A DNA stretch of 64,000 nt from NCBI GenBank assembly GCA_009859145.1, contig VRVR01000033.1, positions 124,001 through 188,000 of the forward strand, in the 5' to 3' direction. Shown here in pieces: positions 3,075 to 60,197 of the stretch. Position numbers and translations under genes: made by a program. Numbering within the stretch: the stretch's first letter is position 1; every line of letters begins with the position of its first letter. The notes under the pieces were generated by a model. It ran no database searches, was not told the DNA's origin, and was given only the letters and a program-made list of their open reading frames with translations. This DNA is from Andalucia godoyi And28. Lineage: Eukaryota > Protista > Jakobida.

Positions 3075-3378
3075 GGCTGTTTTGTTAATTGTTTTGTTTT
3101 TGTTGTTTCTGCGGGGGGGGCGGGGGGGTTTCTTTTTTCTTCCTTCTCTTTCCCCCTTCGTCCCCTTCATCGTGATTTGTGCGTTTAGTTGTGTCGAAAT
3201 AAAGGCGTTTCTGTTTGCGACTTGCAGTTTTTGCATCAGACTGGGGCCTGTGGGTGGAAGGGTGGGAGATGACGAACTTCCGATGTGCTGCCGTATACGT
3301 TCCGTTCTCATCTTCCTTGGAAATGGGAGGGGAAAAAATAAAATAAGTATACTGGTGAGTGAGTGCCGTTAAAAGCAA

Positions 3379-5820
3379 TTACATCTTTCTGGGCTTTGCA
3401 CTGTCCCGTGCTCTACCTACCATCCAATTAACGGTCTCGCAGCCACCCCTTGCCCACTCAAACCGGCTTTTCACATTCGAGCAGATCCACGACTCAATTT
3501 CAGAAGCCAGCAGAGCGGTAGCCGATGTCGAAGACGAGACGATTGCCTTTTGCAGCGATCCAGACTGTTTCTCAAATGTCAAGTCAACCGTGACACCGTA
3601 CGAAGAATCGAGAAGAACGTGAACTGAAGTCAAGATTCGAGGAATCAGCTCTGCGCAGTTCAGTTCCAGAGTCAGTGAATCTTCGATGCGCTCAGCCTCC
3701 GCCTTCAGCGTTTCGACCTCGGAAGTGGAATAGTCGACGGCGGTGTGGACCAACGAAGAAATGTCATTTTGGGCGGACTGCAGGGAAGCATCCATCTCCG
3801 CGAGCATCCTTCTGCTCTCTTCCACTTGCTGGGAAAGACTGGAGTTCTTCTTCTCAAGCGACGACACGACACCGGTAAGTTCAGCCAGCTCATCCTGCTC
3901 CTTCAAAGACAGAGCCTGAATGGAACGAGTGCGTTCCAGCAGTTCTTCCTGCTTCTTTTCCTGAAGAAAGATGATTTGTTCCTCGACGGACATCGTAGAT
4001 TCCGTGACATCACGCAGCAGTTGCTCCAAGCCTGAAACATCGGATTCGAGAGTCAGCACTGCCTGCTCCTTGTTCGAGACCATGTGCTTCTCAATGCGCG
4101 ATCTCCACATGTTCCATTCGCTCTTCGCCCGAACCGATGCGACTCCCTTGATGCGCTTCAAGCACGACTCGCTGATTTGGGTATCGTGCGGAACCTCCGA
4201 CTCCAAAAGCGATGCAATTCGCATGGACATGTCTTTGGAGACAGACTCCAGTTGCGAGACCGCCCACTCCAGGTAGTCGTGCTCAGGAAGCGTAATGACG
4301 CCTGCGCGCAGGACATCGTCAAAGTTGAAATCAACCGGCGCGGAGGGAATCATAATTGAGGAGGTGGACCGCTTGGCAGTCATGGAAGTGGACAGATCCA
4401 GCATGCTTGCATCTGACATGAAAGAAAGCACATCCCTCAGAAGCTTCCTTGGTTCGCCGCTGTTTGCCGCATTCGCCCCGGCATTTGGCTTGTCTCCTTG
4501 ATCAAGCTCAGCATCGCGAGGAAGGATCTGTGTAACATCCATGTCCATATCGCCGCCATCCGAAGCACCACCCAGCGACCTTCTCTGTTCAGCAAACCGC
4601 GGCACAACAGAGGTGGAGTCCATGTTCATGCTTTGCTCGAGCCCTGCAGTCACGCTTCCTCTTGGCAGAACCGACGTCAGCTCCATTCCCATCGACTCAC
4701 GTTTCCAAGATTGAGTAGCTTCCTGTTCTGACTCTGCAGAAGATTGGAAACGGCTCCGTGGAAGCACACTTGTCAAATCCATTCCAACTGATTCGCGATT
4801 CATGTCCTGAGAATAAGGCTGAGAATGATTTTGCGGATGTGATTCCATGGGGGATAACACACGTGTGCACTCCATATCCATTGGTTCCCCGGTCATTTCC
4901 AGGTAACGAGCATCGCTGCGCGGAAGAACCGAGGTGAATTCCATTTCGAATCCGTTGATGGATTCTCTGGCCGGAGTCACATTCGCAAGCGGTGTCTCCA
5001 GGTTTCGCGGAAGCACAGCAGTGAGCTCCATTCCGATGGATTCACGACCTGCACTTTCAAAGACTGCACCTTTCCGGACTTCTTCTTCGCCTGAAGCAGG
5101 ACACAGCCGCGGGATAACGCATGTCAGTTCCATCTCTGCAGTGCTATCCTGGTGAGCGGCCGCGAATGTGCAAGACCCGGTGACCATCGATCGGGGAAGA
5201 ACAGCAGTAAGCTCCATCGCTGCGTTCTCCACCGACGCTCTGCGAACCTGCTGCGGGGTTCGTTTGGGAGTCGCTTTCTGCACAGGCTTTGCAGGAGACT
5301 GTGATGGTTGATTATTTGTGGACGCCCGCTTTCGAAGGGGTAAAACGGAAGTGAGATCCATTGTGTCGTTTTGGACATGAATCTCCGACAGCACTGAGCC
5401 TGAAATATCAGACGCTGAAATTTCAAATGAGATGTTTGCGTTGCTGTGAGCCGAATTATCAAATGCAGATGCTGTTGTTGGTGTTGATGATGATGACACC
5501 GAAGAAGAAGAAGAAGAAGAAGAAGAAGAAGAAGAAGAAGAAGAAGAACTGATTGAGGAAACGGTCGAAGCAGTCGTGTTCGCGCTGTCATTGGAGAATG
5601 CAGGTTTCGAAGCAGCAAGTACCGGAGAGTCCCATTCTGCTTGTCTTGTTTCGAACACGCGGATCTGGTTACTCGACGCAAACGAAACACGCTTGTTTCC
5701 TCCGATGGAAGATGCTCGTTTGGAAGACCGGCGCTTCTTTTGTCCTGATTCCGGCGAAAGCATCATTGGATACGAAGCCGGGCTCTCGCAAATCATGTTT
5801 TCCTTGTTGGAATATGACAT
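3379..5820 (-). CDS. KNL1: Kinetochore scaffold KNL1/Spc105/Spc7-like protein
   Basis: N-terminal KRVSF PP1-docking motif, about ten MELT-like repeats (MDLTSVLP, MELTAVLP, MELTCVIP, MEFTSVLP etc.) and a C-terminal coiled coil. Confidence 0.85.
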   Translation of the reverse strand: MSYSNKENMICESPASYPMMLSPESGQKKRRSSKRASSIGGNKRVSFASSNQIRVFETRQAEWDSPVLAASKPAFSNDSANTTASTVSSISSSSSSSSSSSSSSSSSVSSSSTPTTASAFDNSAHSNANISFEISASDISGSVLSEIHVQNDTMDLTSVLPLRKRASTNNQPSQSPAKPVQKATPKRTPQQVRRASVENAAMELTAVLPRSMVTGSCTFAAAHQDSTAEMELTCVIPRLCPASGEEEVRKGAVFESAGRESIGMELTAVLPRNLETPLANVTPARESINGFEMEFTSVLPRSDARYLEMTGEPMDMECTRVLSPMESHPQNHSQPYSQDMNRESVGMDLTSVLPRSRFQSSAESEQEATQSWKRESMGMELTSVLPRGSVTAGLEQSMNMDSTSVVPRFAEQRRSLGGASDGGDMDMDVTQILPRDAELDQGDKPNAGANAANSGEPRKLLRDVLSFMSDASMLDLSTSMTAKRSTSSIMIPSAPVDFNFDDVLRAGVITLPEHDYLEWAVSQLESVSKDMSMRIASLLESEVPHDTQISESCLKRIKGVASVRAKSEWNMWRSRIEKHMVSNKEQAVLTLESDVSGLEQLLRDVTESTMSVEEQIIFLQEKKQEELLERTRSIQALSLKEQDELAELTGVVSSLEKKNSSLSQQVEESRRMLAEMDASLQSAQNDISSLVHTAVDYSTSEVETLKAEAERIEDSLTLELNCAELIPRILTSVHVLLDSSYGVTVDLTFEKQSGSLQKAIVSSSTSATALLASEIESWICSNVKSRFEWARGGCETVNWMVGRARDSAKPRKM
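5501..5548. repeat. (GAA)16 microsatellite, read as poly-Ser in KNL1
   Basis: Perfect trinucleotide run inside the minus-strand CDS. Confidence 0.95.
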
Positions 5821-6059
5821 TTCTTCTTCCCGCTTATTATTATTACTGTTGTTTTTCCTTCCTTTTTTTCCCCGAGATGTGCGCGCTCAGCAAGAAAACG
5901 GGTGTTCGTTTGTTTGTACTTTTCTGGGAAAATGCCTTTGTTTTTGGAAGGACAATATTTGCCTTTTCCTTCCTTTGTTCTTTGCAGTCTTGTCAGTGTG
6001 TCCGCGCTTTTTTTTTTTCTTGGTTTGGTTAACGGTGCACTTTGCCGGACTGTTATCAG

Positions 6060-6148
6060 CTGACACTCACACTGACACTCACACTGACACTCACACTGAC
6101 ACTCACACTGACACTCACACTGACACTGACACTCACACTCACACTGAC
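6060..6148. repeat. Tandem repeat, 12-mer CTGACACTCACA x5 plus degenerate units
   Basis: Directly visible, in the divergent KNL1/D-LDH intergenic region. Confidence 0.93.
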
Positions 6149-6429
6149 AAGTTCATAGCAAAACTGAGCGGCAGGTGAAAGGGGCAACTCGAAGTGTGCA
6201 AAAATAGACTGTTCTTGGCGGATGTTTTGCATTTTGCTATTTGAGCGTAATCATATAAAAGAAGAAAAATGCGGCTGTGATTCCTGAACACAGAATAAAG
6301 TCTGTTTTTGTTTTGGTTTTTTTGTGGTGTTTTATAATCCCTTTTTTCGTTTTATTTATTTTTATTTTTTATTTAGCCTTTTTGGTTTCCAGTTCACACA
6401 GCATTAGAAAGAAGAAGAAAAAAATAGAT

Positions 6430-7461
6430 ATGGCCAACTTCAAAATTGCCTTTTTCTCGGCACGCAACTACGATCGTCTGTTCTTTAATAAGGCAGCTTC
6501 AGCGCACCCAGAGATCCAGATTTCGTACTTTGACTCTCTTTTGGATGAGTCGACGGTGAAGCTGGTGGATGGTAGTGATGCCGTCTGTGTGTTTGTGAAC
6601 GATGACGTGAACGCGAAAGTCATTGGGCAGTTGCAAAAGGCAGGCGTGAAGTTGATTCTGACGCGATCAGCGGGATTCAATCAAATCGATCTCGTGGCTG
6701 CTCAGAAATGTGGGCTTCCAGTGATGCGTGTTCCTGCGTATTCGCCTCATTCGCCTGCGGAGCATGCAGTCTCGATGATTCTTGCTCTGAACAGAAAGCT
6801 GCACAAAGCGTACAACAGAGTTCGAGAAGGAAACTTTGACATTGACGGTCTACAAGGCTTTGATATGTTTGGGAAAACCGTTGGAGTGGTCGGAACGGGG
6901 AAGATTGGTGCTATTGTGTGCAGGATTCTTTCGCAGGGGTTCCAGTGCAAAGTCCTGTGTTTTGACAAGTATGAGAGCGACGAGGTCAAGAAACTCGGTT
7001 GCAAGTATGTGTCGCTGGATGAACTTCTGGCTGCTTCGGACATCATCTCGCTCCATGCACCGCTAACAAAGGAGACGGAACACATGATCAATGTAGATGC
7101 CATTGCAAAATGCAAGTCTGGAGTCATGATTATCAACACTGGACGCGGTGCGCTGATCGACACAAGAGCACTCATCGATGGGTTAAAATCAAAGAAGATC
7201 TCGGCCGCAGGACTTGATGTGTATGAAAAGGAGAAAGAGTACTTTTACAAGGACTGCTCTGCAGAGGCTGTTGCAGATGACTTGCTCTCCAGACTTCTTA
7301 CGTTTCCGAACGTCCTCATCACATCGCACCAGGCTTTCTTGACCCACGAAGCTCTGACTGCAATCGCGGAAGTCACTGTTGGAAATGTTGCGACATTCCG
7401 TTCCCAAAAGTCGAACGAAAAAATGACAAACGAAGTCAGACCGGAAGACGCAAACTTCTGA
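6430..7461 (+). CDS. ldhA: NAD-dependent D-lactate dehydrogenase (LdhA-type 2-hydroxyacid dehydrogenase)
   Basis: RSAGFN, VPAYSPHSPAEH, Rossmann GVVGTGKIG, LHAPL, INTGRG, GLDVYE.E and VLITSHQAFLT.EAL. ATG 6430 chosen because the upstream extension is low-complexity. Confidence 0.93.
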   Translation: MANFKIAFFSARNYDRLFFNKAASAHPEIQISYFDSLLDESTVKLVDGSDAVCVFVNDDVNAKVIGQLQKAGVKLILTRSAGFNQIDLVAAQKCGLPVMRVPAYSPHSPAEHAVSMILALNRKLHKAYNRVREGNFDIDGLQGFDMFGKTVGVVGTGKIGAIVCRILSQGFQCKVLCFDKYESDEVKKLGCKYVSLDELLAASDIISLHAPLTKETEHMINVDAIAKCKSGVMIINTGRGALIDTRALIDGLKSKKISAAGLDVYEKEKEYFYKDCSAEAVADDLLSRLLTFPNVLITSHQAFLTHEALTAIAEVTVGNVATFRSQKSNEKMTNEVRPEDANF

Positions 7462-7673
7462 ACTCCGAGCTCAATCTCTTCTCATAGTGTCGATCGTAAA
7501 AATCGGAAGTCCCTCTCATCATTCGTGAATGCGTCTTCGTTTCCGTTCGTTCGTTGGGAGATCCATGCTGATCTTTTATCTGAAGCCTTTAGGGCACACC
7601 CATTTAAATCAATGCAGGGATTCCAGGAACGGGAGGCGTGAAATGCCCGGCGGAACCAGATATTTTCAATCGT

Positions 7674-7907
7674 TCATGAGTGCCCTACGCGAGACTCCGG
7701 CTCGCGCGGGAGCAGGGTGAACGCTTTGTGGCCATGGATGCGCCCCTGCTGCTGCAGATGCCAGTGGTAGCGCACATGGCGTTCAAGCCAGTCGTCAGAG
7801 CACCACAAGAGCGCGCGCTCGGCATCGATGAACTCACGGAAATGGGTGCATTGCTGCACCTCTCCGGGCTGGCGCACGATGTCGTAGAACACACGCGTCC
7901 AGTGCAC
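7674..7907 (-). pseudogene. Orphan high-GC3 coding fragment, possibly from a Fanzor1-type mobile element
   Basis: GC-rich island between AT-rich flanks. The minus frame has mostly G/C-ending codons but no ATG start. WLERHVRYHW...GHKAFTLLP loosely recalls the K.F.LLP segment of Fanzor1 proteins. Confidence 0.3.
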
Positions 7908-8385
7908 CCCTGATGTTGGATTAAAACAAATAAATAAAATACATAGTATTTTATTTAATATTTTGGCACAACGAAACTAAAAGAGAAAAACAAGAGCAAA
8001 CAAAGAAAGAGAAACAGACCAAACAGACAACGTGTGGCGAAGTGTGAGGAGGATGTGGTGCCAAATAAACACGGTGAAGTATCAAAAAAAAAAAAAAAAT
8101 ACGAACACAGCAGTGTTTTATTCAATATTTTATTTGACACAACGAAGTCCAAGGTGAAACGGGAGAAAGGGAAAAGGAAAAAGGGAATGGGTTCAACAAA
8201 CAAAATCCAGGGGACGAGAGACAGCGGATAACAGGCAATAGATGAAAGGAAAAGAGAGAAACGGAAAGGGGAAAACGAAGACCGGTCTGAGGAACTGCTG
8301 GAATGTCTGAATGGAAAGCGCCCTTGTATATTTTTATATTTTTTTTTGATTCAACCGTAACTGCTTGTCCACTGGTTTATCCCCT

Positions 8386-8386
<1 letters not shown>

Positions 8387-8419
<33 letters not shown>
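8387..8419. repeat. (TAT)11 microsatellite
   Basis: Directly visible. Confidence 0.95.
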
Positions 8420-8498
8420 GACGACATATTTACACTCTAAATTATTTTAATTTTGTTATTGGCACACCGACGATAGAAGTAATCTGGGTTTGCAGAAG

Positions 8499-9563
8499 AT
8501 GCCGTGTTTTCCGTCGAGAAAAAAAGCAGTTACCTTGCGGAGCACCCCAGCGAAATCCTGGGATGTGCCTTTGCATCTGATGGAGTTACTGCATGAAGTC
8601 GTTATTTTGTGTCATTCAAAAGGCTGGCGTCCATATCTTGATTTTGGATCGCTGCTTGGGTGCATTCGCACGGGAGTCATGGTTCCCTGGGACTACGATG
8701 TGGATATTTCGTTCTTCGAGGAAGATTACAATCAAATGCTCGAGTTTTTCAATTCATTGCCTGCAAAAACTCTTGGAAACATGCGTTGGGACGCTCTTAC
8801 TTCGTACACGATGGGCGATCCAGCGACGTGTCGTATTTTTCACGCTGTTGCACCAGTTCGGTATCCGTGGAAGGAGAACATGTCGTTTGAAACTGGGATT
8901 GATATCATGTGCGTGAAGATGTATCCAGAGACCAAGGAATGTGGAACTAGCATGCGTGCAGAAACATATCAGCGATGGCGAGGTGTCTACACACACCCTG
9001 AAGACTGTGTCTATCCTTTGAAACAAGAATGGTTTATGGGAATCAAGTGCTGGGTCCCCAACAAGCCAGAGGAAGTCCTAAAGCGAAACTATGGAAAGAA
9101 CTGGAAGAAGCCCGACGTTTCTCAGGAAAAGGTGGACGAATACGGAATCCTTACCCTTCCTCCTTGTACAGTAATTTCAAAGTCTACGGTTTTCTGCAAG
9201 ATTGTGCCGTTGAAGGATCCAGCGGAAGAACTGACGGAAAAGGGTTCGAGCTTGGCCGAAGTTGCACGAAATGCTGCCGTCACAGAAGACTGGAAGTTGC
9301 CTGTGATTGTCTGGTTCATCGCAGAAACAGATGCTGAACAGGGGGGGTTGGATCAGCCGGCGTTTGAAAGTGCAAAAAGCATGGGAGCCATCATCAGGTC
9401 TTCGGATTTTGGTGTATGGGGCAAGCTGTTTGCTGTAGAAGCGACACCGTTGACTGCGATTTTGCTCGATACTGCCAAGTATTGGTGGAGATTGGCTCCG
9501 ACAAGAGTGGAAGACGTTGTGGACTTTACGCCTGTGCTCCCGCCGCCGACCAGCACCAAATAG
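8499..9563 (+). CDS. LicD/fukutin-family nucleotidyltransferase-fold phosphotransferase
   Basis: LDFGSLLGCIR...PWDYDVDI motif and C-terminal VPNKPEEVLKRNYGKNWKKP. A TTTGCAG just before 8499 could be a splice acceptor, so the start is uncertain. Confidence 0.8.
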   Translation: MPCFPSRKKAVTLRSTPAKSWDVPLHLMELLHEVVILCHSKGWRPYLDFGSLLGCIRTGVMVPWDYDVDISFFEEDYNQMLEFFNSLPAKTLGNMRWDALTSYTMGDPATCRIFHAVAPVRYPWKENMSFETGIDIMCVKMYPETKECGTSMRAETYQRWRGVYTHPEDCVYPLKQEWFMGIKCWVPNKPEEVLKRNYGKNWKKPDVSQEKVDEYGILTLPPCTVISKSTVFCKIVPLKDPAEELTEKGSSLAEVARNAAVTEDWKLPVIVWFIAETDAEQGGLDQPAFESAKSMGAIIRSSDFGVWGKLFAVEATPLTAILLDTAKYWWRLAPTRVEDVVDFTPVLPPPTSTK

Positions 9564-9664
9564 AGCCGGGGCTGGTTGCTGGTTGCTGCTGTCGTTGCTG
9601 TTGTTGCTGCAGGAGTTGGTCACTCTTTTCTTTTGAACGGCATCTTTTTTTCTTTATGGATTCG

Positions 9665-11797
9665 TTAGTTTCGACGGATTTTGCTCTTCCGTTCTTGGTG
9701 AAGTCGGTACATGTCATCCACTTGTCTAGGACCGTGGTCAGCCCCACCATCATCCTCGTCATCGCGAGCCCGCTTCATTCCTGGCGCAAAAACATCCGTC
9801 ATGCCGGCGGTGCGCAGTGGGGGAAGCGGGTTTCGGGTCAGCGACTGGATAACCGCGTCGGCAGGGATCACCGGACCAGAATACGCGGTTGGTAAGCGTC
9901 TGATAAAATCCTGAAGAATATCCGAAGTTCCTGTGAACTGCACCATGATGGACAAATCTGGCCGAGGATACGAACGCATAGGGGCCTGCTCCTCCAGTTT
10001 GTTTTCATCCGTGATCGAAAACACACCGTACAATGACGGATCAACTGTTCGCCAGTCATCCAATGCCAGTCCCTGCAATGCATCCACCTTGTGTCGCTTG
10101 ATGACGGCCCTTCTGGTCGTGGACGAATCATCCGCAGAAGAAACCTCCTGCAACTCATGAACCTTCCACGGGATAAGATCCCGGAACGAATTCTTAAGAA
10201 CCATCGAGTGCAGCGATGACCGGACATCAAGACCGAGGGCGTCCGCTCTTCGTCGCAGGACATTTTCCAGCGACGATGGATCTCCAAATCTTCTTTCAAC
10301 ATCCACATACCGATTCCACAGCTCCGCAGATTGCTCTTGCGGCAATTGCGGAAGCGACCGATCCAGCATCACTCGAATGTTGTTGTCGTCTTCGATTCGC
10401 TCCAAAAAATCCACGTATTCAAGCAAGAATGACGCATCAAGGGCGTACTTCTTCGCCGCAAACTTGAAGATTCTCTTCGCAACTTCCGGCTCCTTGTTTG
10501 TGTGAAGCTCCATCAATGCGGAAGCGGCGTAGACGTGCCACGTGGTATGGGGACACTGCACCGCGCGAACCAGAATTTCTCGAGCAGCCTCGGTACTTTG
10601 CACTCTCCGCAGCAACTTTTGCAATGTAACAAAAAGCAAGGAGATCTCGCGTTTCAAAGCCTGCACAATCGCCTCGTGTGCAAGAGACGCTGACTCACCT
10701 GCCATCTGCTCCGACTTTGCAACTCGTCGTTCGATTTCCATGTCGAGAACCTCTCGTGCAGCACCTGGATCCTTTCTCGCTCGCTCTTCAAACTCGGCTT
10801 GAGCGAGAACCAACAGCAAGCACTCGGGCAATGCTTCTTGCCGAGCCTCGATGTAGACCCGATTGGCTTCTTCGAAGCGACCCTGGTCGCTTAAAAACGA
10901 AGCATAGTCACACCACGCTTGTGGAGAATGCGTAAAATACATCAGCATTTGTCTGTAGAGAAGTTTGACTCGGGTGAATACATCTCGCTTACCAAGGCGC
11001 TGTTGATTGCGCTTTTCTTCTGCAACCAGCTTCATCCAAATCGCGAGTTGTCTTTCTTCTGTCGGATCGCCGACGCTCGGTCTTGCTAGGAGACTCCACT
11101 GAATGACTTGCCGATCTGCACGTCGGTCAAGATACATTTGCTTCGCACCCTTGTGTTTTGGCAGCTCTTCCGACAATCTTCGTGTGAATGTCGTCTCGTC
11201 GATGTCCTTTTCATACTCCTCAAAGCGCTTCCAAATCTGTTCTCCACCGTCCAACGGAATTTCAATTGCGCGACGAAAGACTCCTCGGATCTTTTGCATT
11301 CTTTCAACCTTTTCATACTCGGAAGTTGAAACTGGCTCTCTCAGCAGCAAGTCAATGTACTCGATCCACATCGGTCCTGCTGCAGGGTCGGTTCCAACGT
11401 CTTCAAACAATGAAGTTGAATACATTTGCTTTAACCGTGCCTGGTCCGCTTGCTTGTGATTGGACAAATAGCGGATGTGCAGCAAGTGGATCTCAACATA
11501 CGGACAAAGCGCCTTTGCTTTGACAAACAAATCGTCCAGATACTGGATGTTTGCCAGTCGATCCATTTCTTCGCAAATTGCAAGATTCTGGATTTCAGTC
11601 TGGATGTAGCTCGTCCAGACCGAAGGTGACCGAGGAAACACTCGCAAACAACCCTCAAACTTTGGTCGTCGATCCCCAACAGACAACTTTTCAAAGAGCG
11701 GAATGAGCTGTTGCCAAACTGAAGTATTGTACAGGTCAGACTGAATTCCAGAAAGCACCAGGGCTTCGAGCTTGCTGATTTTCTCCACAATCGACAT
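9665..11797 (-). CDS. CSTF3: Cleavage stimulation factor 77 kDa subunit (CstF-77/Rna14/Suf), HAT repeats
   Basis: HAT repeats (FEGCLRVFP.S...W..YI, IRGVFRRAIEIP, WHVYAASALME, AKRIFKFAAKKY, ELWNRYVDVERRFGD) and the C-terminal PRPD/QF motif. Confidence 0.9.
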   Translation of the reverse strand: MSIVEKISKLEALVLSGIQSDLYNTSVWQQLIPLFEKLSVGDRRPKFEGCLRVFPRSPSVWTSYIQTEIQNLAICEEMDRLANIQYLDDLFVKAKALCPYVEIHLLHIRYLSNHKQADQARLKQMYSTSLFEDVGTDPAAGPMWIEYIDLLLREPVSTSEYEKVERMQKIRGVFRRAIEIPLDGGEQIWKRFEEYEKDIDETTFTRRLSEELPKHKGAKQMYLDRRADRQVIQWSLLARPSVGDPTEERQLAIWMKLVAEEKRNQQRLGKRDVFTRVKLLYRQMLMYFTHSPQAWCDYASFLSDQGRFEEANRVYIEARQEALPECLLLVLAQAEFEERARKDPGAAREVLDMEIERRVAKSEQMAGESASLAHEAIVQALKREISLLFVTLQKLLRRVQSTEAAREILVRAVQCPHTTWHVYAASALMELHTNKEPEVAKRIFKFAAKKYALDASFLLEYVDFLERIEDDNNIRVMLDRSLPQLPQEQSAELWNRYVDVERRFGDPSSLENVLRRRADALGLDVRSSLHSMVLKNSFRDLIPWKVHELQEVSSADDSSTTRRAVIKRHKVDALQGLALDDWRTVDPSLYGVFSITDENKLEEQAPMRSYPRPDLSIMVQFTGTSDILQDFIRRLPTAYSGPVIPADAVIQSLTRNPLPPLRTAGMTDVFAPGMKRARDDEDDGGADHGPRQVDDMYRLHQERKSKIRRN

Positions 11798-12017
11798 GAG
11801 CCTGCGTTCCACAAATATACCCAATCCAACTCCACGCGCTGCGCTGCTTGTTGCCTTCTTGTTTCGAAAAAACAAGAAACACAGAGGGAGAAAGCCGCAA
11901 CCGAAGGGCATACGCCAATAGAGAAGCTTCTGAGAGTTCAGACCCTTCTTGTGCAGGACGCGCGGTGTACGACTGCGGCAGGATTTGTGCGAACGACTCG
12001 GGACGAATTACCCTCCA

Positions 12018-12432
12018 AACCCAAAAACCTCTCCCAACATTAGTCTCGCATTTTGTGCCTCAGACAGATCTGGTTGGCGTAAAGTGACTGTATAATCTGC
12101 ATCAGCGCCCACCCAATGAGCTCCCCTTTTGAGTGGGGCATCCGTGGGTCTGCGCACTCCAAACAGAATCAGCTTATGTTTCCATCAAAGCTCTCTATTC
12201 GATCAATTGGAACATTCGTTTGAACCATTTGAACCCTGGGCACCAGGAAAGAACTAGGGATTTTCAACGAGCTTCATTTATTGCCACTCCGCATATTTAT
12301 CCACTTGTTCTCTCTCTCTCTCTCTCCCTCTCGATCTCTCTCGATCTCATTGGGCCTCGACCTGCGCACCTTCAGCCATACTGTCCGATGTTATCACAGC
12401 CGTCCACCAGACCTCTGGGTTGAAGGGCTATA
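12018..12432 (+). mobile_element. Degenerate dispersed repeat, copy A, homologous to 41946-42176 (minus); possible Fanzor2 RuvC-I region relic
   Basis: 12345-12432 matches the reverse complement of 41946-42033 at 77/88 nt. A second block, 12018-12112, matches 42075-42176 with gaps. Confidence 0.6.
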
Positions 12433-12773
12433 CCAAAACAAAAAAAACACCCAACCAAAAAAAGGCCAGCTTTCGATGGAGCGTCGGGCCCTTGGGCGAG
12501 CGAGCATCGACCCGTGGTCGTGACTTAATCCTGGTGCGTACGCTCGACACAGGCCGGCAGTGATGTGGGACACCCGGAAAACGCTCTTAAGAACACGGCG
12601 GCTCGGCTTTTGGTGTTGTGCTCTCAAAAAAGAAGCATTCAATCAACACCACGTCATATGTTCATGTCTGACCTGGCAAAAGTCAAGTGTTCAAGAATTC
12701 TAATCGTTATGAGGCGTGCGCGTACAATAAAACGATTTTGATACATGCATGTGGGCGCGGATGACTTTTATCA

Positions 12774-33458: not shown

Positions 33459-36400
33459 TTACGAGGAGCACATAGTGCATCCTTCTTCTCGGGTGCACAC
33501 CCATGCCGCAGGGTTCTCAGCAGTATTCGACGAATCTGCATTCTTGACTTCGTTGCTGACGACAACACTGGAGTCCACAGTGAACTTGATTGCATCTGCG
33601 GCAGGCCGTGTCCGCAAGTAGTACATTCCAGTTTTAAGACCAAGTTTCCACGCATAGAAATGCAAACTGGAAAGTTTTGAATTGTTGGGGGAGGCCATGA
33701 AGATGTTTAAAGATTGCGACTGGTCTATGAAACACCCTCGGTCAGCTGCGTAGTCCACGATGATGCGCTGCTTAATCTCCCATGCAGTCTTGTAAATTTC
33801 CTTGATGCTGTCCGGAATTCCAGAAATATTCTGAATGGATCCGCTCGAAGCAATGATGCTGTTCCTCATTTTCTCGCTCCAGAGGTTCAGCCGGATCAGG
33901 TCACGGACAAGATGATTGTTGACCACTGGGAACTCTCCTGCGAGGACACGGCGCAAATAAATGTTCGATGTGTACGGTTCAAAGCAGTTGTGCACAACCA
34001 CGCCATTCGCTACAAAGTTATGCAGATCTGCAACGTTGATGTCGTACACAGACACCTTTCCAGCAGGGCGTCTGTCGACAAGCTGCAATTTCATGGTGGG
34101 AGCCGCCGTTGCACGGATGTCCAGTGCGTATGTGTGCTGCTTGTTCGTCTCTTCGTCATCATCTTCAGCGCCAGACGCGAACCATCCGTGCGCGCCAATG
34201 TTTTCGAGAAAATGCTCGGCCGACATCACGGAATTGAACTTGAACTGTCGAAGCTCCTCCGTGTTGTGTTTGCGATGTTCATGAAGCTGAGAGACTGGCG
34301 GTTTTGACGGTCCGGGCGTCGCTTCGGCTGCTGCACAAACTTCCTCTTGTTGCCGACTCACCTCGGCCAGATAGCGCGACCATGCTGCGACGACTCCGTA
34401 GCGATGAGATTTGTGTACCGAGTAGCGGATACCAATCTTGTCCATGAACGTGTGTTGAGAGAGAGCACCCAATGGGAAGCCGACGCGCACGCACACATGC
34501 CCGTGCTCTCCGCAGCGGCAAGGTCTGTCGCCGTTAGTATTCTTCACATCTCGAATGTTGATGATCGACGCCCCAGGGACACCAGCTTCGGCCAGCAGTA
34601 CGCACAGTTGGTTCATAGCCGTAATCAGCGACTCGCGCTCAATCATACAGGCCGATTGCGAGAATCGGATCGGCGAGAAAGTTTTCACCTCGTTGTCGTT
34701 TCCTATAAGCACCGGAGTCCAGCCATCACCCCCAAAAAGTCCAGCCAGAAACTCACGACGCACTGCGACTGGGCAAGCGGGATCCAACACGAATGCAGGC
34801 CACGAGGCAGTTGATGTTCCCTGTGCACCGCTGACCGCACCTCCCAAATCCCCAATCGCACGGGCCAACGGGCCAGACACAACAACCTCGAAGCAATCTC
34901 GCTCGTTGATGCGAACAGTTGCTTTTCCACCGAGTGACTCGACGTCAGACACGAAGGCATCACGATCGAGGGGTTGCTCAAACACAGCAGTAACTTTCTC
35001 CGCCTGGACGGACCCGCCGGAGCGGACAAACCCAGCTACACGCGCGAACGCCAGCGCAATATCCCTTCCCGTCGCCGTGGTCAGAATACCAACTGCAGTA
35101 TCAAGAGACCATCCGTTCTCATCAGTACCGATTACATCTGGTGTTCCGGAGAAAGCTAGCATCACCGGAGCGCCGTTCAGCTCGATATTACGAGCCTCGC
35201 ACCACTCGCCACTCGTCATCATGAACTTGTGATCAGGAGTGCATGTGATGGTGCGTCCATCGGCGAAGGTGAGGCACACAACATCTTTCTCGCCTCGCGG
35301 AAGGAATTCGGTGACCTGAGCACCAACCATGCCTCCAGCTTTGTCGGAATAGGCTGCCACAATCTGTCCGGGGCGGATCTGATGAATGGGAACGCTGGTC
35401 CCGTTGAAGAGCGTGACTGGCGTGTCCCCGGAAAAACATTCGTTATTTCCAAGAATCTGGGAAGTGGACGCAGTAGGCATAGGAGCAACAAGAAGAGAGT
35501 TTCGAACACCAAATGTGTGGATTCGCTGTCGGAGCCCGTCCCAGTCCCAGCGGCCAGACAGCACCACGCGGTCCTTAGCCCACATGTCGAACTGCAGAAT
35601 TCCTTTGGACACTGGAGACCCTGGATATGTTTCATAAGGACCACTCTGTTCAGCAAGCGCACAAGACTCTGAAAGTGCGGCAAAGTACAAGCATTCAAAG
35701 ATCTCACGATTCAGATTACGCGCGACTTCAGACTCGAAAGGCATCTTTAACAGCATGAACACATCTGCAAGCCCCTGGACTCCTAGGCCTACTGGTCGGT
35801 GACGGAAGTTTGAACGGGAAGCCTTCTCGACAGGATAGTAGTTGACATCAATCACTCGGTTCAGATTTCGGACAACGAGACGAGTGACATTGTAGAGCTG
35901 TTCGAAGTCAAAAGACAGTTCTTCCGATTCATTCTTGATTTGGCTAACAAATCTCGGAAGCGCAATGGAGGCCAGATTACAGACAGCCGTTTCCTCAGAC
36001 GAAGAGTACTGGATGATTTCTGTGCATAGATTGGACGATCGAATGGTTCCCAGGTTCTGCTGATTGGACTTCGCATTTGCAGCATCTTTGTACAGCATAT
36101 ACGGAGTTCCTGTTTCCATTTGCGATTCCAAAATCGCGAACCACAACTCTTGTGCCTTGACGACACGTCGGGCCTTCCCAGCAGCTTCGTATTTTTCATA
36201 CAATGTTTCGAACGTCGACCCCCAGGACTCGTACAATCCTGGGCATTCGTGGGGACAAAACAAGCTCCATGTCGCATTCGCCTCAACCCTCTTCATGAAC
36301 AAGTCTGGAATCCACATTGCGTAAAACAAGTCACGCGCACGCATCTCTTCCTTTCCCGTACCCTTCTTGAGGTCCAGAAAATCAAAAATATCAGCGTGCC

Positions 36401-38402
36401 ACGGTTCCAGATAGACGGCAAAAGAACCCTTGCGCCGACCTCCGCCGTTGTGCACGATTCCGCTGCACAGAATCACATACGTCATGTTCTTCGCGACTTC
36501 GAGATCGTACAAGGGTTGGTTGCGACCTTCTTCTGCCGTAATTTCGACGTTTTCGATGCGAGAAAACGCATAGTCTCCGTGCCGCACACAGTTCACCCAT
36601 TCGCCTGTTGAAATTCCAAGGGCACGTGCCACAACTTCTGTACGAGGGACGCAAATGCAGTGCAAAACGCCTGTGCGCGCAAGCCCGTTCTCAAATCGCT
36701 TTTCGATGCGATCGCGAAGGTAACCGGATGTAAGAATGCCATGACGCATGAGCATGAATCGAATGCTGTCAACAAAGACTCGGGATGTCATTTCGATTGC
36801 TACTGCCTTTTCGCCAACGCATCCATCTGACTCAACAACGCCACGAAGAACAGCAAGAGTCTTATCTAGTGGCAGTCGCAGCATCGTTTTGTGGAATATT
36901 TTCTCGCGAAAATTGTTGTACAGGAGCTCGCGATCCGCAGGAATCTTCTCGGTTCGTTGGAACATGATCACAAGCGACCCCAATTTTTCAGATTCGTGCA
37001 CTTCAATGCCTTTCAATTGCAGGTACTGAACAACGAAATCACGAACGGCATATCCCCGTGATACATCGAGGAAGATTCGTGTTTCGTTGCTCGCTTCGTC
37101 AGACCAGCCGCCAGCAGACATTATGCCATAGAATCGACAGTCTTCTGCAGACCAGGCAACGTCCACGTGTGCTTTGTCTACCGGGAAGCAAACGAAGTCG
37201 CCCACATGCAAATCTTTTGCATCAAGCCATTCTGGCTGCACAGTGCCTTGTTCCAAAAGAATATGAATGGCATCGTAATTAGCAGATAGCCCGGGATCTT
37301 TCAGCACAAAAAATTGGTGTTCATCCGTAACCTCCACTGGCTCAATAGCATGCTTCACCGTGATGCGACGCATCGAACGGGGAGAATCAGAAGATGGTGC
37401 ATGCTCCAAAACACGATTCACATGACAGTACTCGCCCGTGTGGGTCATAACACGATCCCCAACTTTCAATGTGCGAATTTCCACGGGTCCATTTTCTGTG
37501 ATCACTTTCGTGTCTCCTGGAAAACACTGGTCGACGTATCGGGCAGTATCATTGAATACGCGAAGCATGGGAACGAGCCCATTAGATACACCATTTGTGC
37601 CCGCAATGTACGATCCCTTAGCTCGAATTGGATGAACTGATAAGCCTATTCCCCCAGCATACTTTGAAATCATGGCACATTCTTTTAGGGTGTCATAGAT
37701 CCCAACAATCGAATCATCTGACATCGTTACCAGGAAGCACGAGGATAGCTGGGGTCGAGGAGTGCCCGCGTTGAACAATGTGGGTGTCGCATGAGTATAC
37801 AAGCGACGAGACAGCATGTCGTACGTACTCAATACTTCGGAAACAGAAGAAGACAAATTCAAGCCGCAAGCAACACGCATCAACAAGTGCTGCGGACGCT
37901 CCGCAACTCGCCCATCGATCCTCAGAAGATACGATTTCTCCAGAGTTTTGAACCCGAAAAAGTCGTATCCAAGATCTCGCGAGTCGTCAACTGCCTCGTC
38001 CAGGACATCCTTGTGTTCTAAAACATACTCGAACAATTCCTGAGACACAAGCGGTGCTGGTGTGCCGGTCTGCGGATTCACGTAATTCCGCAATAACGTT
38101 GTTGTTTCCGAGAATTTGGACGGAGTAGTTTTGTGAAGTGCAGTGACTGCGATGCGCCCTGCAAGAACACTGTAATCCGGATGCTGTGGTGTTAAATAGG
38201 CTGCCGTCTCAGCAAGCAGCTCGTCGATCTTTGTGGTTGTCACAAGAGAAGGCGCACCGGATGCAACTTTGTCCAAAATAAGATCAATCGAAACCCAGGT
38301 CAAATCAAGACCATCACAGAGAGGAACAATCCGAGAGCGCAAGACTTCCCGATCGAAAGGAACGGAAGATCCGTCCCGTTTTGTCACGAGAGATGATGAC
38401 AT
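33459..38402 (-). CDS. RRM1: Ribonucleotide reductase class Ia large subunit (R1) precursor containing two inteins
   Basis: ATP cone (VTKRDG), catalytic SSCF, SNLCTEI and VCNLAS, tyrosine pair GMYYL, C-terminal CTMC. 1647 aa minus 360 minus 484 leaves an 803-aa mature R1, the expected size. Confidence 0.97.
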   Translation of the reverse strand: MSSSLVTKRDGSSVPFDREVLRSRIVPLCDGLDLTWVSIDLILDKVASGAPSLVTTTKIDELLAETAAYLTPQHPDYSVLAGRIAVTALHKTTPSKFSETTTLLRNYVNPQTGTPAPLVSQELFEYVLEHKDVLDEAVDDSRDLGYDFFGFKTLEKSYLLRIDGRVAERPQHLLMRVACGLNLSSSVSEVLSTYDMLSRRLYTHATPTLFNAGTPRPQLSSCFLVTMSDDSIVGIYDTLKECAMISKYAGGIGLSVHPIRAKGSYIAGTNGVSNGLVPMLRVFNDTARYVDQCFPGDTKVITENGPVEIRTLKVGDRVMTHTGEYCHVNRVLEHAPSSDSPRSMRRITVKHAIEPVEVTDEHQFFVLKDPGLSANYDAIHILLEQGTVQPEWLDAKDLHVGDFVCFPVDKAHVDVAWSAEDCRFYGIMSAGGWSDEASNETRIFLDVSRGYAVRDFVVQYLQLKGIEVHESEKLGSLVIMFQRTEKIPADRELLYNNFREKIFHKTMLRLPLDKTLAVLRGVVESDGCVGEKAVAIEMTSRVFVDSIRFMLMRHGILTSGYLRDRIEKRFENGLARTGVLHCICVPRTEVVARALGISTGEWVNCVRHGDYAFSRIENVEITAEEGRNQPLYDLEVAKNMTYVILCSGIVHNGGGRRKGSFAVYLEPWHADIFDFLDLKKGTGKEEMRARDLFYAMWIPDLFMKRVEANATWSLFCPHECPGLYESWGSTFETLYEKYEAAGKARRVVKAQELWFAILESQMETGTPYMLYKDAANAKSNQQNLGTIRSSNLCTEIIQYSSSEETAVCNLASIALPRFVSQIKNESEELSFDFEQLYNVTRLVVRNLNRVIDVNYYPVEKASRSNFRHRPVGLGVQGLADVFMLLKMPFESEVARNLNREIFECLYFAALSESCALAEQSGPYETYPGSPVSKGILQFDMWAKDRVVLSGRWDWDGLRQRIHTFGVRNSLLVAPMPTASTSQILGNNECFSGDTPVTLFNGTSVPIHQIRPGQIVAAYSDKAGGMVGAQVTEFLPRGEKDVVCLTFADGRTITCTPDHKFMMTSGEWCEARNIELNGAPVMLAFSGTPDVIGTDENGWSLDTAVGILTTATGRDIALAFARVAGFVRSGGSVQAEKVTAVFEQPLDRDAFVSDVESLGGKATVRINERDCFEVVVSGPLARAIGDLGGAVSGAQGTSTASWPAFVLDPACPVAVRREFLAGLFGGDGWTPVLIGNDNEVKTFSPIRFSQSACMIERESLITAMNQLCVLLAEAGVPGASIINIRDVKNTNGDRPCRCGEHGHVCVRVGFPLGALSQHTFMDKIGIRYSVHKSHRYGVVAAWSRYLAEVSRQQEEVCAAAEATPGPSKPPVSQLHEHRKHNTEELRQFKFNSVMSAEHFLENIGAHGWFASGAEDDDEETNKQHTYALDIRATAAPTMKLQLVDRRPAGKVSVYDINVADLHNFVANGVVVHNCFEPYTSNIYLRRVLAGEFPVVNNHLVRDLIRLNLWSEKMRNSIIASSGSIQNISGIPDSIKEIYKTAWEIKQRIIVDYAADRGCFIDQSQSLNIFMASPNNSKLSSLHFYAWKLGLKTGMYYLRTRPAADAIKFTVDSSVVVSNEVKNADSSNTAENPAAWVCTREEGCTMCSS
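33987..35438 (-). mobile_element. Intein 2 of R1 (484 aa), LAGLIDADG homing-endonuclease type, canonical Cys+1
   Basis: Inserted at QILGNNE|CFEPYTSN. Block A CFSGDT, block B ITCTPDHKFM, block E FLAGLFGGDG, block F VYDINV...HNFVANG, block G VVHN/C. Confidence 0.96.
36447..37526 (-). mobile_element. Intein 1 of R1 (360 aa), LAGLIDADG type, non-canonical Gly at +1
   Basis: Inserted at TARYVDQ|GGGRRKGSFAVYLEPWH. Block A CFPGDT, block B VEVTDEHQFF, block E LRGVVESDG, block F LYDLEV, block G IVHN, followed by GGC (Gly) at 36444-36446. Confidence 0.94.
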
Positions 38403-38715
38403 GAACTTGTGCAGGCAGGGAAAGAGGCCACCAAAAACAAAAAACAAAAAACAAAACAAAACAAAACAGAAGAGGGTAAAAAGACAGAGTTAGAATACAA
38501 AAGATTTGATGTTTCTTTGGAGGGTTTTTTAAAAAAACAAGAAAAAAGTGAATCAGTGAACATTGAAATGACGGGCAAATGGGAAAAAACAAATGAACAG
38601 GAAGAAACGGTGAGAAAAGAGGCCTTTGACTTGGGGTCGGACGACTTGCGGGTTGCGAGTGGGACTGGAGTGGAAGAATTTGAAATTCAGTCTGTTTGTG
38701 GCGGGGTTTTGTTTG

Positions 38716-38749
38716 TTTGGCGCCACAGCCGGATGGGTTCCGCGGGAAA
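38716..38749. promoter_or_regulatory. Pair of E2F-consensus sites in the putative R1/R2 bidirectional promoter
   Basis: TTTGGCGC at 38716-38723 (+) and TTTCCCGC at 38742-38749 (-), near the centre of the 608-bp head-to-head intergenic region. RNR genes are established E2F targets in animals and plants. Confidence 0.55.
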
Positions 38750-39010
38750 AAAACCCGATTGATGGTATTAGCGTGTTTCAGTGATCCGGCTCCCGCCAAC
38801 CGTCCACTGGCGCCACTGAAATTCGGACAAAACGACAAAATACACTCGAAATCAACTCAATCATCGCTTTGTCACGCATCTTTGTTTGTTTGCTGTTGTT
38901 GTTTTTTGCGTACTGTTTTGCTGTTTTCTTTTGAAACTTTTCAGTCTATTCCGGTTTATCTTTCTCAACTAACTTCTCATTTTTTTCCTCACCTTTTTCT
39001 CATTCTAACA

Positions 39011-58019: not shown

Positions 58020-59840
58020 TCAGTTTCTCTGCGGGAGCAACGTGGGTTGCAAAACAGCCCAGATGGCTTTGGCAGATGGTGCCGGGCAAATCTTGATTTC
58101 AGAGCACACCTTTGCAGGAGTGGCGAATTCCGACAATTCGTACACAATCACTGGCAAGTACGTTGCAATCAAAGACTGGCAGATGTCGTTCAACGACGCA
58201 GGCAACTTAGCACATACTTGATCAAGTCCGTTGAGAATCGCAGCTTCCGTCCGGTTGGATGCAATGATCTTCTCAGCTTCCGAAATAATCAGCTTGCAGA
58301 TCTCGCATTCGACGGCATTCTGGACAGGGGCAGCAGCGACTTCGATGGGCATCATATCAATTGCAACCTTCGAGGCAGAACGGGAACCGCACTTGGTCGG
58401 CGAATTGCACAGGGTGAGCTCGTAGCAGATCACAGGCGGAGTCTCCTTTTGCAAGAATGCCTGAACCAAAGCCGGGAAATAGTCTGCAACAAGTTCGACG
58501 CACATTCCAGACAGGGAGGCGGGCAGCGCTGCACACAGCTTGTTGTCAAGGATATCCATGATGTTGGCTTCAGTACGCTGGTTTCCAATGAGCTTTTCGG
58601 CTTCTCCCATGATCAGCTTGCAAAGTTCGCATTCGACGACATTAGCCTTCACAGCAACAGGAGCTTCCATGGAGGACGGAGCACACAGCTTGAGGGTAGT
58701 GCAAAGCTGGTCGAGCGGGTACTTCTGATCGAGATACTGGATGATGGCCGGCGCATACTGATTGACAAGAGCAGTGCAGACGCCGCTCAAAGGCCCGAGC
58801 TTTGCGCAAATTCCGTCAAGAACCTTCTCGACATCAGTAACAACAGTCTGAGACGCAATGATCTGTTCAAGTTCCTTGGAGATCAACTGGCAGATGACAC
58901 ACTCAATTGCGTTTCCACCGACGGCCCCCTCCGGAGCAACGGCTTCCTCCATCGAAGAAGTGCAAAGGGAAATCTTCTGGCAGATAACATCGGCCGGATA
59001 CTTCTGCTCGAGATATCCGATGATTGCAGGGGTATATTGGTTGATCAACGACTGGCAAATTGGTCCCAAAGGTCCAAGCTTTGAGCAAACTGAATCCAGC
59101 GCCGCCTCGATCTTGGATTCCGAGTAGTTTCCAGCAAGAAGATTTTCAACCTCGGACAAGACAAGCTTGCAGATTGTGCATTCAAGACCGGAAGCCTCCA
59201 CGTCGACAGCAGTTGCAACAACGGCTTCCTGAGCCACAGCCTCCGTCAGAGCCATTGAGGCATTGCACAAGTTCAACTTCTGGCAGATAACCGTCGGAGT
59301 ATACTTTGCCTCGAGGTACTGGATAATCTGCGGAGTGTACTGGTCGATGATTCCCTGGCAAACCGACGCCAACGGACCAAACTTGGAGCAGACCTCGTTC
59401 AGAGCAGCTTCAATGTTGGACTCGGAGTAGTTTCCAGCAAGGAAGATCTCCACTGCATCGAACATTGCACCGCAGAGTGCACATTCGAGCTCGCTTTCAA
59501 CAGGCTCTTCAACAACCGAAACTTCAGTAGCGGCGCAGAAGCCGACCTTTTCGCAGAAAGCCTCCGCAGGGAACTTGTTGACCAGCCACGTCACAATGTC
59601 ATCCGTATACGCATTCACCAGGCTCTCACATAGCGATGCAAGAGGGTGGGCGATCTTCGAGCAAACATTGTCAAGCTCCTTGACAATGAAGGTCTCCGTG
59701 CGGTTTGACTCGACAACACGGTCGAGCTCTGTAATCACCAGCTTGCAAACGCCGCATTCAAGAGCATTGGCGCGAGGAACAGATGCCGTGGACACAGCCA
59801 ACAAGCAAAAGACTGCGGCAACCAAGAAAACAATCTTCAT
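58020..59840 (-). CDS. Secreted prosaposin/SAPLIP precursor with six saposin-B domains
   Basis: Signal peptide and six repeats of EC..C...C...C...C...C with N-glycosylation sequons (NRT, NYS). Confidence 0.9.
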   Translation of the reverse strand: MKIVFLVAAVFCLLAVSTASVPRANALECGVCKLVITELDRVVESNRTETFIVKELDNVCSKIAHPLASLCESLVNAYTDDIVTWLVNKFPAEAFCEKVGFCAATEVSVVEEPVESELECALCGAMFDAVEIFLAGNYSESNIEAALNEVCSKFGPLASVCQGIIDQYTPQIIQYLEAKYTPTVICQKLNLCNASMALTEAVAQEAVVATAVDVEASGLECTICKLVLSEVENLLAGNYSESKIEAALDSVCSKLGPLGPICQSLINQYTPAIIGYLEQKYPADVICQKISLCTSSMEEAVAPEGAVGGNAIECVICQLISKELEQIIASQTVVTDVEKVLDGICAKLGPLSGVCTALVNQYAPAIIQYLDQKYPLDQLCTTLKLCAPSSMEAPVAVKANVVECELCKLIMGEAEKLIGNQRTEANIMDILDNKLCAALPASLSGMCVELVADYFPALVQAFLQKETPPVICYELTLCNSPTKCGSRSASKVAIDMMPIEVAAAPVQNAVECEICKLIISEAEKIIASNRTEAAILNGLDQVCAKLPASLNDICQSLIATYLPVIVYELSEFATPAKVCSEIKICPAPSAKAIWAVLQPTLLPQRN

Positions 59841-60197
59841 TGTTGCTGAGTAAGAGGGGGACGGAAACACTAAAAAAATGAATATGGAGAAATCTTAAGG
59901 AAGAAAAAGAAGAGGAAGGAAAGCGAAAAGAAAACAAGAAAGCGAAAAGAAGAAAGATATATAAATACGATGCGATGACAAGGCAGCCCAGGCCCGCCTT
60001 TCGTTTGCTGGTTGGTTGCCCTCCTGTTGGACTGCGCAGGCCGAAAAAAGAGAATAAGAGAATAATTCTCCGCTAAGTGGTCGGGCATCGTTGCATGGAA
60101 ATAGCAGCTACACAGTGTGGGTTTTTTTGGACGACATTCATCAAGAAAGCGCATGTCTGTCACAAATGATGGATGTGGTGCTCGATAAGGGAATGTG

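Follow-up and report, generated by a model that had tools for sequence, protein, structure and literature searches.

In a 64,000-nucleotide stretch of the Andalucia godoyi And28 genome (contig VRVR01000033.1, positions 124,001 to 188,000 of the forward strand), called the window here, we characterized a gene for R1, the large subunit of ribonucleotide reductase (RNR), whose coding sequence is interrupted by two inserts. We regard it as virtually certain that this is a chromosomal, intron-free class Ia R1 gene of the nucleus that carries two inteins. The most interesting feature of the locus is the residue following the first of them, intein 1. All residues for autoprocessing are kept and the next residue is a glycine (+1 Gly), in conflict with the rule that Cys, Ser or Thr comes after an intein. 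An explanation that combines an intein-bearing nuclear gene with splicing of intein 1 through direct attack by the freed glycine amine on a thioester is probably the best overall account of the locus.

The gene is read from a single minus-strand open reading frame (ORF; 33459..38459), in which the first ATG, at 38402, gives a product of 1647 amino acids (aa). Pfam profiles detect the ATP-cone, the all-alpha Ribonuc_red_lgN domain and the barrel domain (E 6e-204) in this precursor, together with Hint/intein and LAGLIDADG signals, and the human and yeast R1 structures align to it as three collinear pieces (aa 6-292, 651-989 and 1474-1647). A first-pass annotation of the window had placed the two inserts at 37526-36447 and 35438-33987, and these coordinates were borne out exactly (aa 293-652 and aa 989-1472). 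As that annotation also proposed, excision of both inserts leaves an R1 of 803 aa (89.9 kDa) with all catalytic residues, as seen in the Pfam and structure matches and in the motifs: LSSCFL, SSNLCTEI, AVCNLAS, GMYYLRT and the C-terminal CTMCSS are all present. The protein thus has the features of a class Ia R1, namely the ATP cone, the all-alpha domain, the ten-stranded barrel, the Cys/Asn/Cys/Glu residues, the YY pair and the CxxC motif. The annotation was also right that the NL/CTEI site (a slash marks the point of insertion) is empty and that two other sites are occupied, since SSNLCTEI runs on without interruption (aa 789-796, nt 36015-36038). Its statement that removal of the inserts restores R1 exactly is true of the sequence at both junctions, but ordinary splicing cannot act at intein 1; the YVDQ-GGG junction had been positioned correctly, but its non-nucleophilic +1 Gly had gone unremarked.

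Both inserts are open throughout. Frames of 360 and 484 codons would stay open by chance with probabilities of 8e-9 and 4e-9, and the two other forward frames of the inserts contain 13-18 stops each, which excludes a chance origin. Both begin with the codon TGT and end with AAC, such that exact removal of either as a GT..AG intron is impossible. They lie in frame at conserved R1 sites and are absent from the R1s of human and yeast and from 120 others. The R1 extein itself is 60-66% identical to many cellular R1s in the database, which come from Bacteroidota and early fungi, with no near neighbor.

R1 would be translated as a 183-kDa precursor bearing two unrelated, full-length inteins, each with a Hint and a LAGLIDADG part and each an old resident of the genome. 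AlphaFold2 (AF2) models and Foldseek matches assign both inserts the two-domain fold of the PI-SceI type. An N-terminal Cys, the block B Thr-x-x-His, the block F Asp, the His-Asn pair and the Hint fold, all features of class 1 inteins, are found in both. The canonical +1 residue is present after intein 2 (Cys) and lacking after intein 1 (Gly, codon GGC). We found no sign that the inteins are copies of one another, as they have only block A in common, and no other intein-like sequence was found in the window.

Intein 1 lies between ...ARYVDQ and GGGRRKG..., which corresponds to the boundary between Gln288 and Gly289 of human R1 (by alignment, with a tag offset of 20). We take this boundary to be inside specificity loop 2, as in established structural work on R1. 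Loop 2 couples the specificity site to the catalytic site. A word-indexed protein search returned no match for intein 1, and its family was collected by a full HMMER scan of 1.84 billion representatives, which gave 648 matches (151 below 1e-10). Almost without exception these are R1 proteins that carry the insert where intein 1 lies, with the match beginning at about residue 290; the best are P0005 (44% identity) and P0006 (43%). The AF2 model, built from an alignment of 34 relatives, scored a pLDDT of 90.9 and a pTM of 0.90, and Foldseek matched it to PI-SceI (E 1.7e-18), the TliVMA intein (TM 0.68) and PI-PfuI, with a nuclease domain resembling I-DmoI; Pfam LAGLIDADG_3 scored 24.1 bits. A tblastn search of phages found only distant inteins, at other sites.

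The glycine is a property of the family. Among 92 relatives of intein 1 with both junctions readable, every one has Cys1, the block B His and the terminal Asn (92/92 each), and most have the block F Asp (91/92), the His-Asn pair (89/92) and the block B Thr (83/92). The +1 residue is Gly in 65 of the 92 and Ser in the other 27. A neighbor-joining tree has Gly at its root and requires just three changes of the +1 residue; most of the Ser sequences group in a single clade. All 28 of the 28 IMG/VR loci that we read across the junction have the form YVDQ/C...(H or K)N/GGGKRNG, many of them from metagenome-assembled genomes (MAGs) of giant viruses. Given the 65 relatives with Gly, the +1 Gly is not a lesion of the window copy. 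No alternative nucleophile was found near the C-terminus of intein 1, where just one such residue is conserved, the block G Thr, and the +1 Ser clade has it as well; no other Cys, Ser or Thr is conserved there. The Pandoravirus R1 inteins appear with a YVDQ/C.../GGGKRKG junction in a published table, in a paper that makes no comment on it (Green et al., 2018; PMC5784728). An intein is held to need a following Cys, Ser or Thr (PMC1635734; PMC4031507), and the absence of a +1 nucleophile is a defining trait of bacterial intein-like (BIL) domains (PMC4031507; PMC1635734). In open-access text, we found no paper noting +1 Gly inteins, a "class 4" intein or the chemistry of Pandoravirus RNR inteins.

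How might intein 1 be removed? Canonical transesterification to a branched ester is impossible, because the +1 Gly is no nucleophile. Autoprocessing chemistry nonetheless appears to be in use, given that an essential gene has kept the residues for it unchanged throughout a family that has diverged to about 30% identity. We suggest that Cys1, with the block B Thr and His, would form the N-terminal thioester, and that Asn cyclization, aided by the block F Asp and the His-Asn pair, would cut the C-terminal junction and free the alpha-amine of Gly+1. This amine would then attack the Cys1 thioester directly and rebuild the Gln-Gly bond, and the ligated junction would read ...ARYVDQGGGRRK... The attack would come from an unhindered residue, a Gly of the Gly-Gly-Gly that is native to R1, whose amine the two folded halves of R1 could keep near the thioester. 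On this analysis, aminolysis by the freed Gly amine may be the likeliest route for intein 1, at roughly even chances of being correct. The step is chemically similar to the reaction of sortase, which resolves a thioester with oligoglycine. A freed amine acting on the thioester has also been proposed for the splicing of type A BILs, which lack a +1 nucleophile (PMC4031507).

Several points weigh against this route. Type A BILs give mostly cleavage products and not ligation (PMC4031507), and mostly cleavage would be a poor outcome for the essential R1. Splicing of the +1 Gly members is a prediction, and our view is limited to the 64-kb window, with a second, intein-free R1 possible elsewhere in the genome. 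The placement in loop 2 derives from alignment to human R1 and textbook numbering, not from a structure of the A. godoyi protein. No relative of intein 1 exceeds 44% identity, which is too distant for a direct measure of selection, and an earlier mention of +1 Gly inteins could lie outside open-access text.

The main rival is that intein 1 cleaves without ligation, leaving R1 as a nicked enzyme of two chains (32 kDa and the rest) held together non-covalently, or another R1 gene serving in its place. The inability of the +1 Gly to form the branched ester would fit this, as would the mainly cleaved products of BIL domains that lack a +1 nucleophile (PMC4031507). Yet none of 150 matches is a family member split into two genes at the loop 2 site, and the +1 Gly state has persisted while the family, within an essential gene, diverged deeply. 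The cut would also fall inside loop 2, which in established structural knowledge of R1 is the link between the specificity and catalytic sites. We consider this rival unlikely; within and beside it, dependence on a second R1 gene or retention of the insert is less likely than the nicked enzyme.

Retention of intein 1 would mean that R1 tolerates a 41-kDa domain in loop 2, perhaps as a regulatory module. The lack of a +1 nucleophile is compatible with this, and the insert is a long-standing resident with host-like codon usage. However, the conservation of Cys1, the block B His, the block F Asp, the His-Asn pair and the terminal Asn has no reason unless autoprocessing is used, and loop 2 is established to lie at the dimer interface. 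Retention is very improbable.

A third possibility is that the inteins are not in a cellular gene, the contig being derived from a virus, from an integrated fragment of a giant virus or from chimeric assembly. The relatives of intein 1 are mostly in giant-virus contigs, and the closest, P0005, belongs to a TS-DHFR-R2-R1 cluster and shares its contig with large ORFans. The window, however, has cellular genes for about 33 kb on one side of R1 and 24 kb on the other. These include genes for an ABCG transporter, a Spc7-like kinetochore protein, CstF77/Suf, an annexin and an EF-hand protein kinase, as well as ORFs for a VPS13-like C2/PH protein, a tubulin-tyrosine-ligase family (TTL) protein, CAP, an RRM protein, a eukaryotic glutathione synthase, a fructosamine kinase and a six-repeat saposin protein. 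GC content is even along the window and across the R1 gene, and GC at third codon positions (GC3) is 0.49 and 0.58 in the inteins, within the range of neighboring genes (0.46-0.60), with similarly host-like codon usage. The extein has only 44% identity to that of P0005, against 62-66% to cellular R1s, and the adjacent gene for R2, the RNR small subunit, is host-like. Since the neighbors are cellular and eukaryotic and the codon usage of the inteins matches the host, the locus is nuclear, neither viral nor chimeric, as the first-pass annotation, which suggested a check of the flanking genes for viral contamination, had held; a foreign origin of the contig is hardly plausible. Least credible of all is removal of the inserts from RNA as unusual introns, for which we found no support and which is at odds with open, in-frame inserts that offer no usable GT..AG boundaries and encode complete intein blocks and high-confidence Hint/LAGLIDADG folds.

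If ligation at intein 1 is efficient, the +1 Gly inteins would provide a natural tool for traceless ligation, with Gly as the sole residue left behind and no need for a Cys or Ser scar, and intein-finding pipelines that demand a +1 nucleophile would need revision. We tentatively propose, at slightly less than even chances, that the loop 2 R1 inteins are a natural and widespread fourth mechanistic kind, nuclease-bearing and mobile and ligating without a +1 side-chain nucleophile. If this equally tentative view holds, an essential enzyme would depend on such chemistry both in giant viruses and in the nuclear genomes of at least two eukaryotes.

The second such genome is that of P0006, which comes from a 4-kb Logan contig (L001) on which R1 and R2 lie head-to-head, both interrupted by very short introns; these introns point to a second copy of intein 1 in the nuclear genome of a eukaryote. 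P0005 is encoded on a 144-kb metagenome contig (L002; JGI 3300072974, contig Ga0613690_000044), where the locus at 1931-12719 encodes TS, a separate DHFR, a RING protein, R2 and R1 and adjoins ORFs of 1272 and 978 aa without a Pfam match. The source is probably a large DNA virus. The P0005 R1 (1572 aa) has two inteins, one at the loop 2 site with +1 Gly and one of the CIV type at NL/C that ends in Gly-Gln. The head-to-head R2-R1 pair is conserved across the three sources (window 38403-39010, L001 333-3951 and L002 6259-12719).

The first-pass annotation had suggested a search of giant-virus metagenomes, and most of the intein 1 family is indeed in R1 genes of giant viruses. Judged by its host-like codon usage, its decayed nuclease motif and a best identity of 44%, intein 1 has probably long been resident in the host lineage. 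It could plausibly have originated by exchange with R1 genes of giant viruses. An R1 intein of giant-virus type in a cellular chromosome bears on the movement of inteins between viruses and eukaryotes. A 2018 survey reports a single nuclear R1 intein and no overlap between the intein sets of viruses and virus hosts (PMC5784728), and a 2023 Anaeramoeba survey does not name R1 among the proteins that have inteins in eukaryotes as well as in viruses.

Intein 2 follows ...ILGNNE, precedes CFEPY... and has Cys1, TPDH in block B, the block F/G sequence VYDINVADLHNFVANGVVVHN with YDINV as block F, a VVVHN end and a +1 Cys. By these motifs it is a canonical class 1 intein, which should splice via the standard four-step route. 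Its AF2 model (pLDDT 75, pTM 0.79) matches the TliVMA intein, PI-SceI and PI-PfuI in Foldseek; the core matches I-Tsp061I and I-DmoI, and the Hint part matches DnaB and RecA mini-inteins at about 2 Å. No close relative was found in scans of IMG/VR or JGI metagenomes, which gave only matches to the Hint N-terminal part. Database relatives are few: an intein-bearing R2, an "intein/homing endonuclease" protein, a DHHC palmitoyltransferase and an inositol polyphosphate kinase. One R1, P0094 (1962 aa), has a homologous 482-aa intein at the same NNE/C site.

The first-pass annotation described RNR inteins as best known from prokaryotes, phages and large DNA viruses. One nuclear R1 intein had already been catalogued at the site of intein 2, however. 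It is the Spizellomyces punctatus intein (XP_016604450), the one nuclear R1 intein given in the supplement of Green et al. (2018; PMC5784728) and also listed in InBase. Intein 2 shares its insertion site (C-extein CFEPYTSN), Cys1, His-Asn and +1 Cys with the S. punctatus intein; in the PMC5784728 supplement the N-extein is cut short and the start of the C-extein is readable. The two are 54% identical over their full length (284/526). Identity reaches 77% in Hint-C and is 60% both in Hint-N and in the nuclease-like core, compared with 64% between the exteins; the S. punctatus intein is 520 aa long and intein 2 is 484 aa. Because the site is the same and the inteins are homologous, the allele was already known and the window provides its second host; nuclear inteins are rare. 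The hosts are not close relatives, given exteins only 64% identical, and a nuclease-like core nearly as conserved as R1 points to constraint on that domain or to transfer after the hosts split. The S. punctatus loop 2 site is empty (YVDQGGNKRPG), such that its R1 has one intein where that of A. godoyi has two. The A. godoyi host is intron-poor, yet its intein 2 is closest to an intein of a chytrid fungus.

Among the relatives of intein 2, P0003 (748 aa, ENA) is an ankyrin-DHHC palmitoyltransferase with a mini-intein, DHH/C...VVHN/CPWVNNC, whose +1 residue is the catalytic cysteine of the DHHC motif, and P0004 is the inositol polyphosphate kinase. Neither kind of protein is named as an intein host in excerpts of the two surveys (PMC5784728; 2023 Anaeramoeba).

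The first-pass annotation called both inserts homing-endonuclease inteins. The fold is there in both, with two alpha-beta-beta-alpha-beta-beta-alpha repeats each, seen in the secondary structure of the models and in the matches to I-DmoI and I-Tsp061I, but the acidic residue that closes the LAGLIDADG helix is replaced by Gly in motif 1 of both. In place of GDG, this motif has SAGG in intein 1 and RSGG in intein 2, and the motif 2 Asp is kept. The loss makes homing activity doubtful, and judged by these motifs both inteins are probably no longer double-strand homing nucleases. Across the intein 1 family, both acidic residues are kept in 46 of the 92 relatives, one in 17 and neither in 29; such a mixture would be expected of a homing cycle in which some copies are active and others have decayed. 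The motif 1 acidic residue is also lost in the S. punctatus intein (RANGS), which has the motif 2 sequence FLAGLFGGDGW in common with intein 2. This motif 1 position is G in intein 2, N in S. punctatus, K in a Trichosporon RNA-polymerase intein and Asp in P0094, P0001 and P0002.

Other R1 proteins among the matches show further arrangements. P0094 has at least three inteins in one R1, at an SS/C site, at the loop 2 site (with +1 Ser) and at the NNE/C site, and several other intein-bearing R1s have inteins at SS/CFL, just ahead of the first catalytic cysteine. Between the NLCxEI strand and the helix after it, five intein-bearing, apparently viral R1s (P0038, P0039, P0040, P0045 and P0081) contain an insert of about 100 aa that has a CxYC motif, as in CDYCKLLKALLK. 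It looks like a glutaredoxin or thioredoxin-like domain fused within R1.

Uninterrupted ORFs of 750-1860 aa lie on alternating strands of the window, which is about 70% coding with a GC content of about 48%, and the host is an unusually intron-poor eukaryote. The features of the R1 locus are listed in Table 1. Two E2F-like TTTSSCGC sites lie in the spacer between R1 and R2; such sites are not enriched across the window compared with shuffled sequence (10 found, 13 expected). Scans of the 64-kb window for tRNAs and Rfam families were empty. Elsewhere, a perfect (GAA)16 run lies within the Spc7-like ORF (5501-5548), and a 12-bp tandem repeat, CTGACACTCACA, is present in 7.5 copies at 6060-6149, in the spacer before a 2-hydroxyacid dehydrogenase gene. 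The minus-strand gene at 58020-59870 encodes the 616-aa protein with six saposin B repeats; a 345-aa ORF opposite it (58047-59084, plus strand) probably reflects no more than the base composition of these repeats.

Table 1. Features of the RNR locus, with positions numbered from the first nucleotide of the window
Feature	Position	Strand	Remarks
R1 (RNR large subunit) precursor coding sequence	33459..38402	-	1647 codons + stop, intron-free, 182.6 kDa
N-extein, aa 1-292	37527..38402	-	ATP cone, all-alpha domain, barrel start with LSSCFL; ends ...ARYVDQ (Q288, human numbering)
Intein 1, 360 aa, 40.7 kDa, aa 293-652	36447..37526	-	C1, block B TDEH, block F Asp (YDLEV), GIVHN; Hint + LAGLIDADG
Intein 1 LAGLIDADG motif 1, FYGIMSAGGWS	37101..37133	-	Family consensus YGIMLGDGH; catalytic Asp replaced by Gly
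Intein 1 LAGLIDADG motif 2, LRGVVESDGCV	36816..36848	-	Asp retained
GGGRRKG, start of middle extein	36426..36446	-	+1 Gly = GGC, nt 36446-36444; no side-chain nucleophile
Middle extein, aa 653-988	35439..36446	-	Contains SSNLCTEI
Intein 2, 484 aa, 52.0 kDa, aa 989-1472	33987..35438	-	C1, block B TPDH, VVVHN end; allelic to S. punctatus R1 intein
Intein 2 LAGLIDADG motif 1, LAFARVAGFVRSGGSV	35007..35054	-	Acidic residue lost (RSGG instead of GDG)
Intein 2 LAGLIDADG motif 2, FLAGLFGGDGWT	34716..34751	-	Asp retained
C-extein, aa 1473-1647	33462..33986	-	Starts with +1 Cys (CFEPYTSN); YY pair, C-terminal CTMCSS
Intergenic spacer R1/R2, 608 bp	38403..39010		Two E2F-like TTTSSCGC sites, 38716 and 38742, 26 bp apart
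R2 (RNR small subunit), 334 aa	39011..40015	+	Intein-free, divergent from R1

The two inteins can be set beside several known systems. In fold, both resemble PI-SceI, the TliVMA intein and PI-PfuI (Foldseek E 1e-15 to 1e-18, TM at most 0.68), but identity to these is 11-15% and the host proteins are different; all three have a canonical +1 residue, and PI-SceI and PI-PfuI are active nucleases. The CIV-type inteins (NL/CTEI, with a C-terminal Gln or Asn) interrupt the same host protein as the window inteins, at another site and from another family, and often co-occur with relatives of intein 1, in at least 17 cases here and in Marseilleviridae entries of a published list (PMC5784728). The giant-virus R1 inteins at YVDQ/GG, found in IMG/VR MAG contigs and, in the same source (PMC5784728), in Pandoravirus and CroV, have the site, architecture and conserved blocks of intein 1. 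These are 29-36% identical to intein 1 and reside in viral genomes, and one large clade of the family has the canonical +1 Ser. In its junction residues, intein 1 resembles a type A BIL, with an N-terminal Cys, a C-terminal His-Asn and no +1 nucleophile. However, type A BILs are small and nuclease-free, lie in variable regions of non-conserved bacterial proteins and mainly cleave, whereas intein 1 has 360 aa and a LAGLIDADG domain and occupies an invariant site of the essential R1 in eukaryotes and viruses. The locus is a new member and a new combination of known kinds of intein, and the +1 Gly family to which intein 1 belongs is a possible new variant of splicing chemistry.

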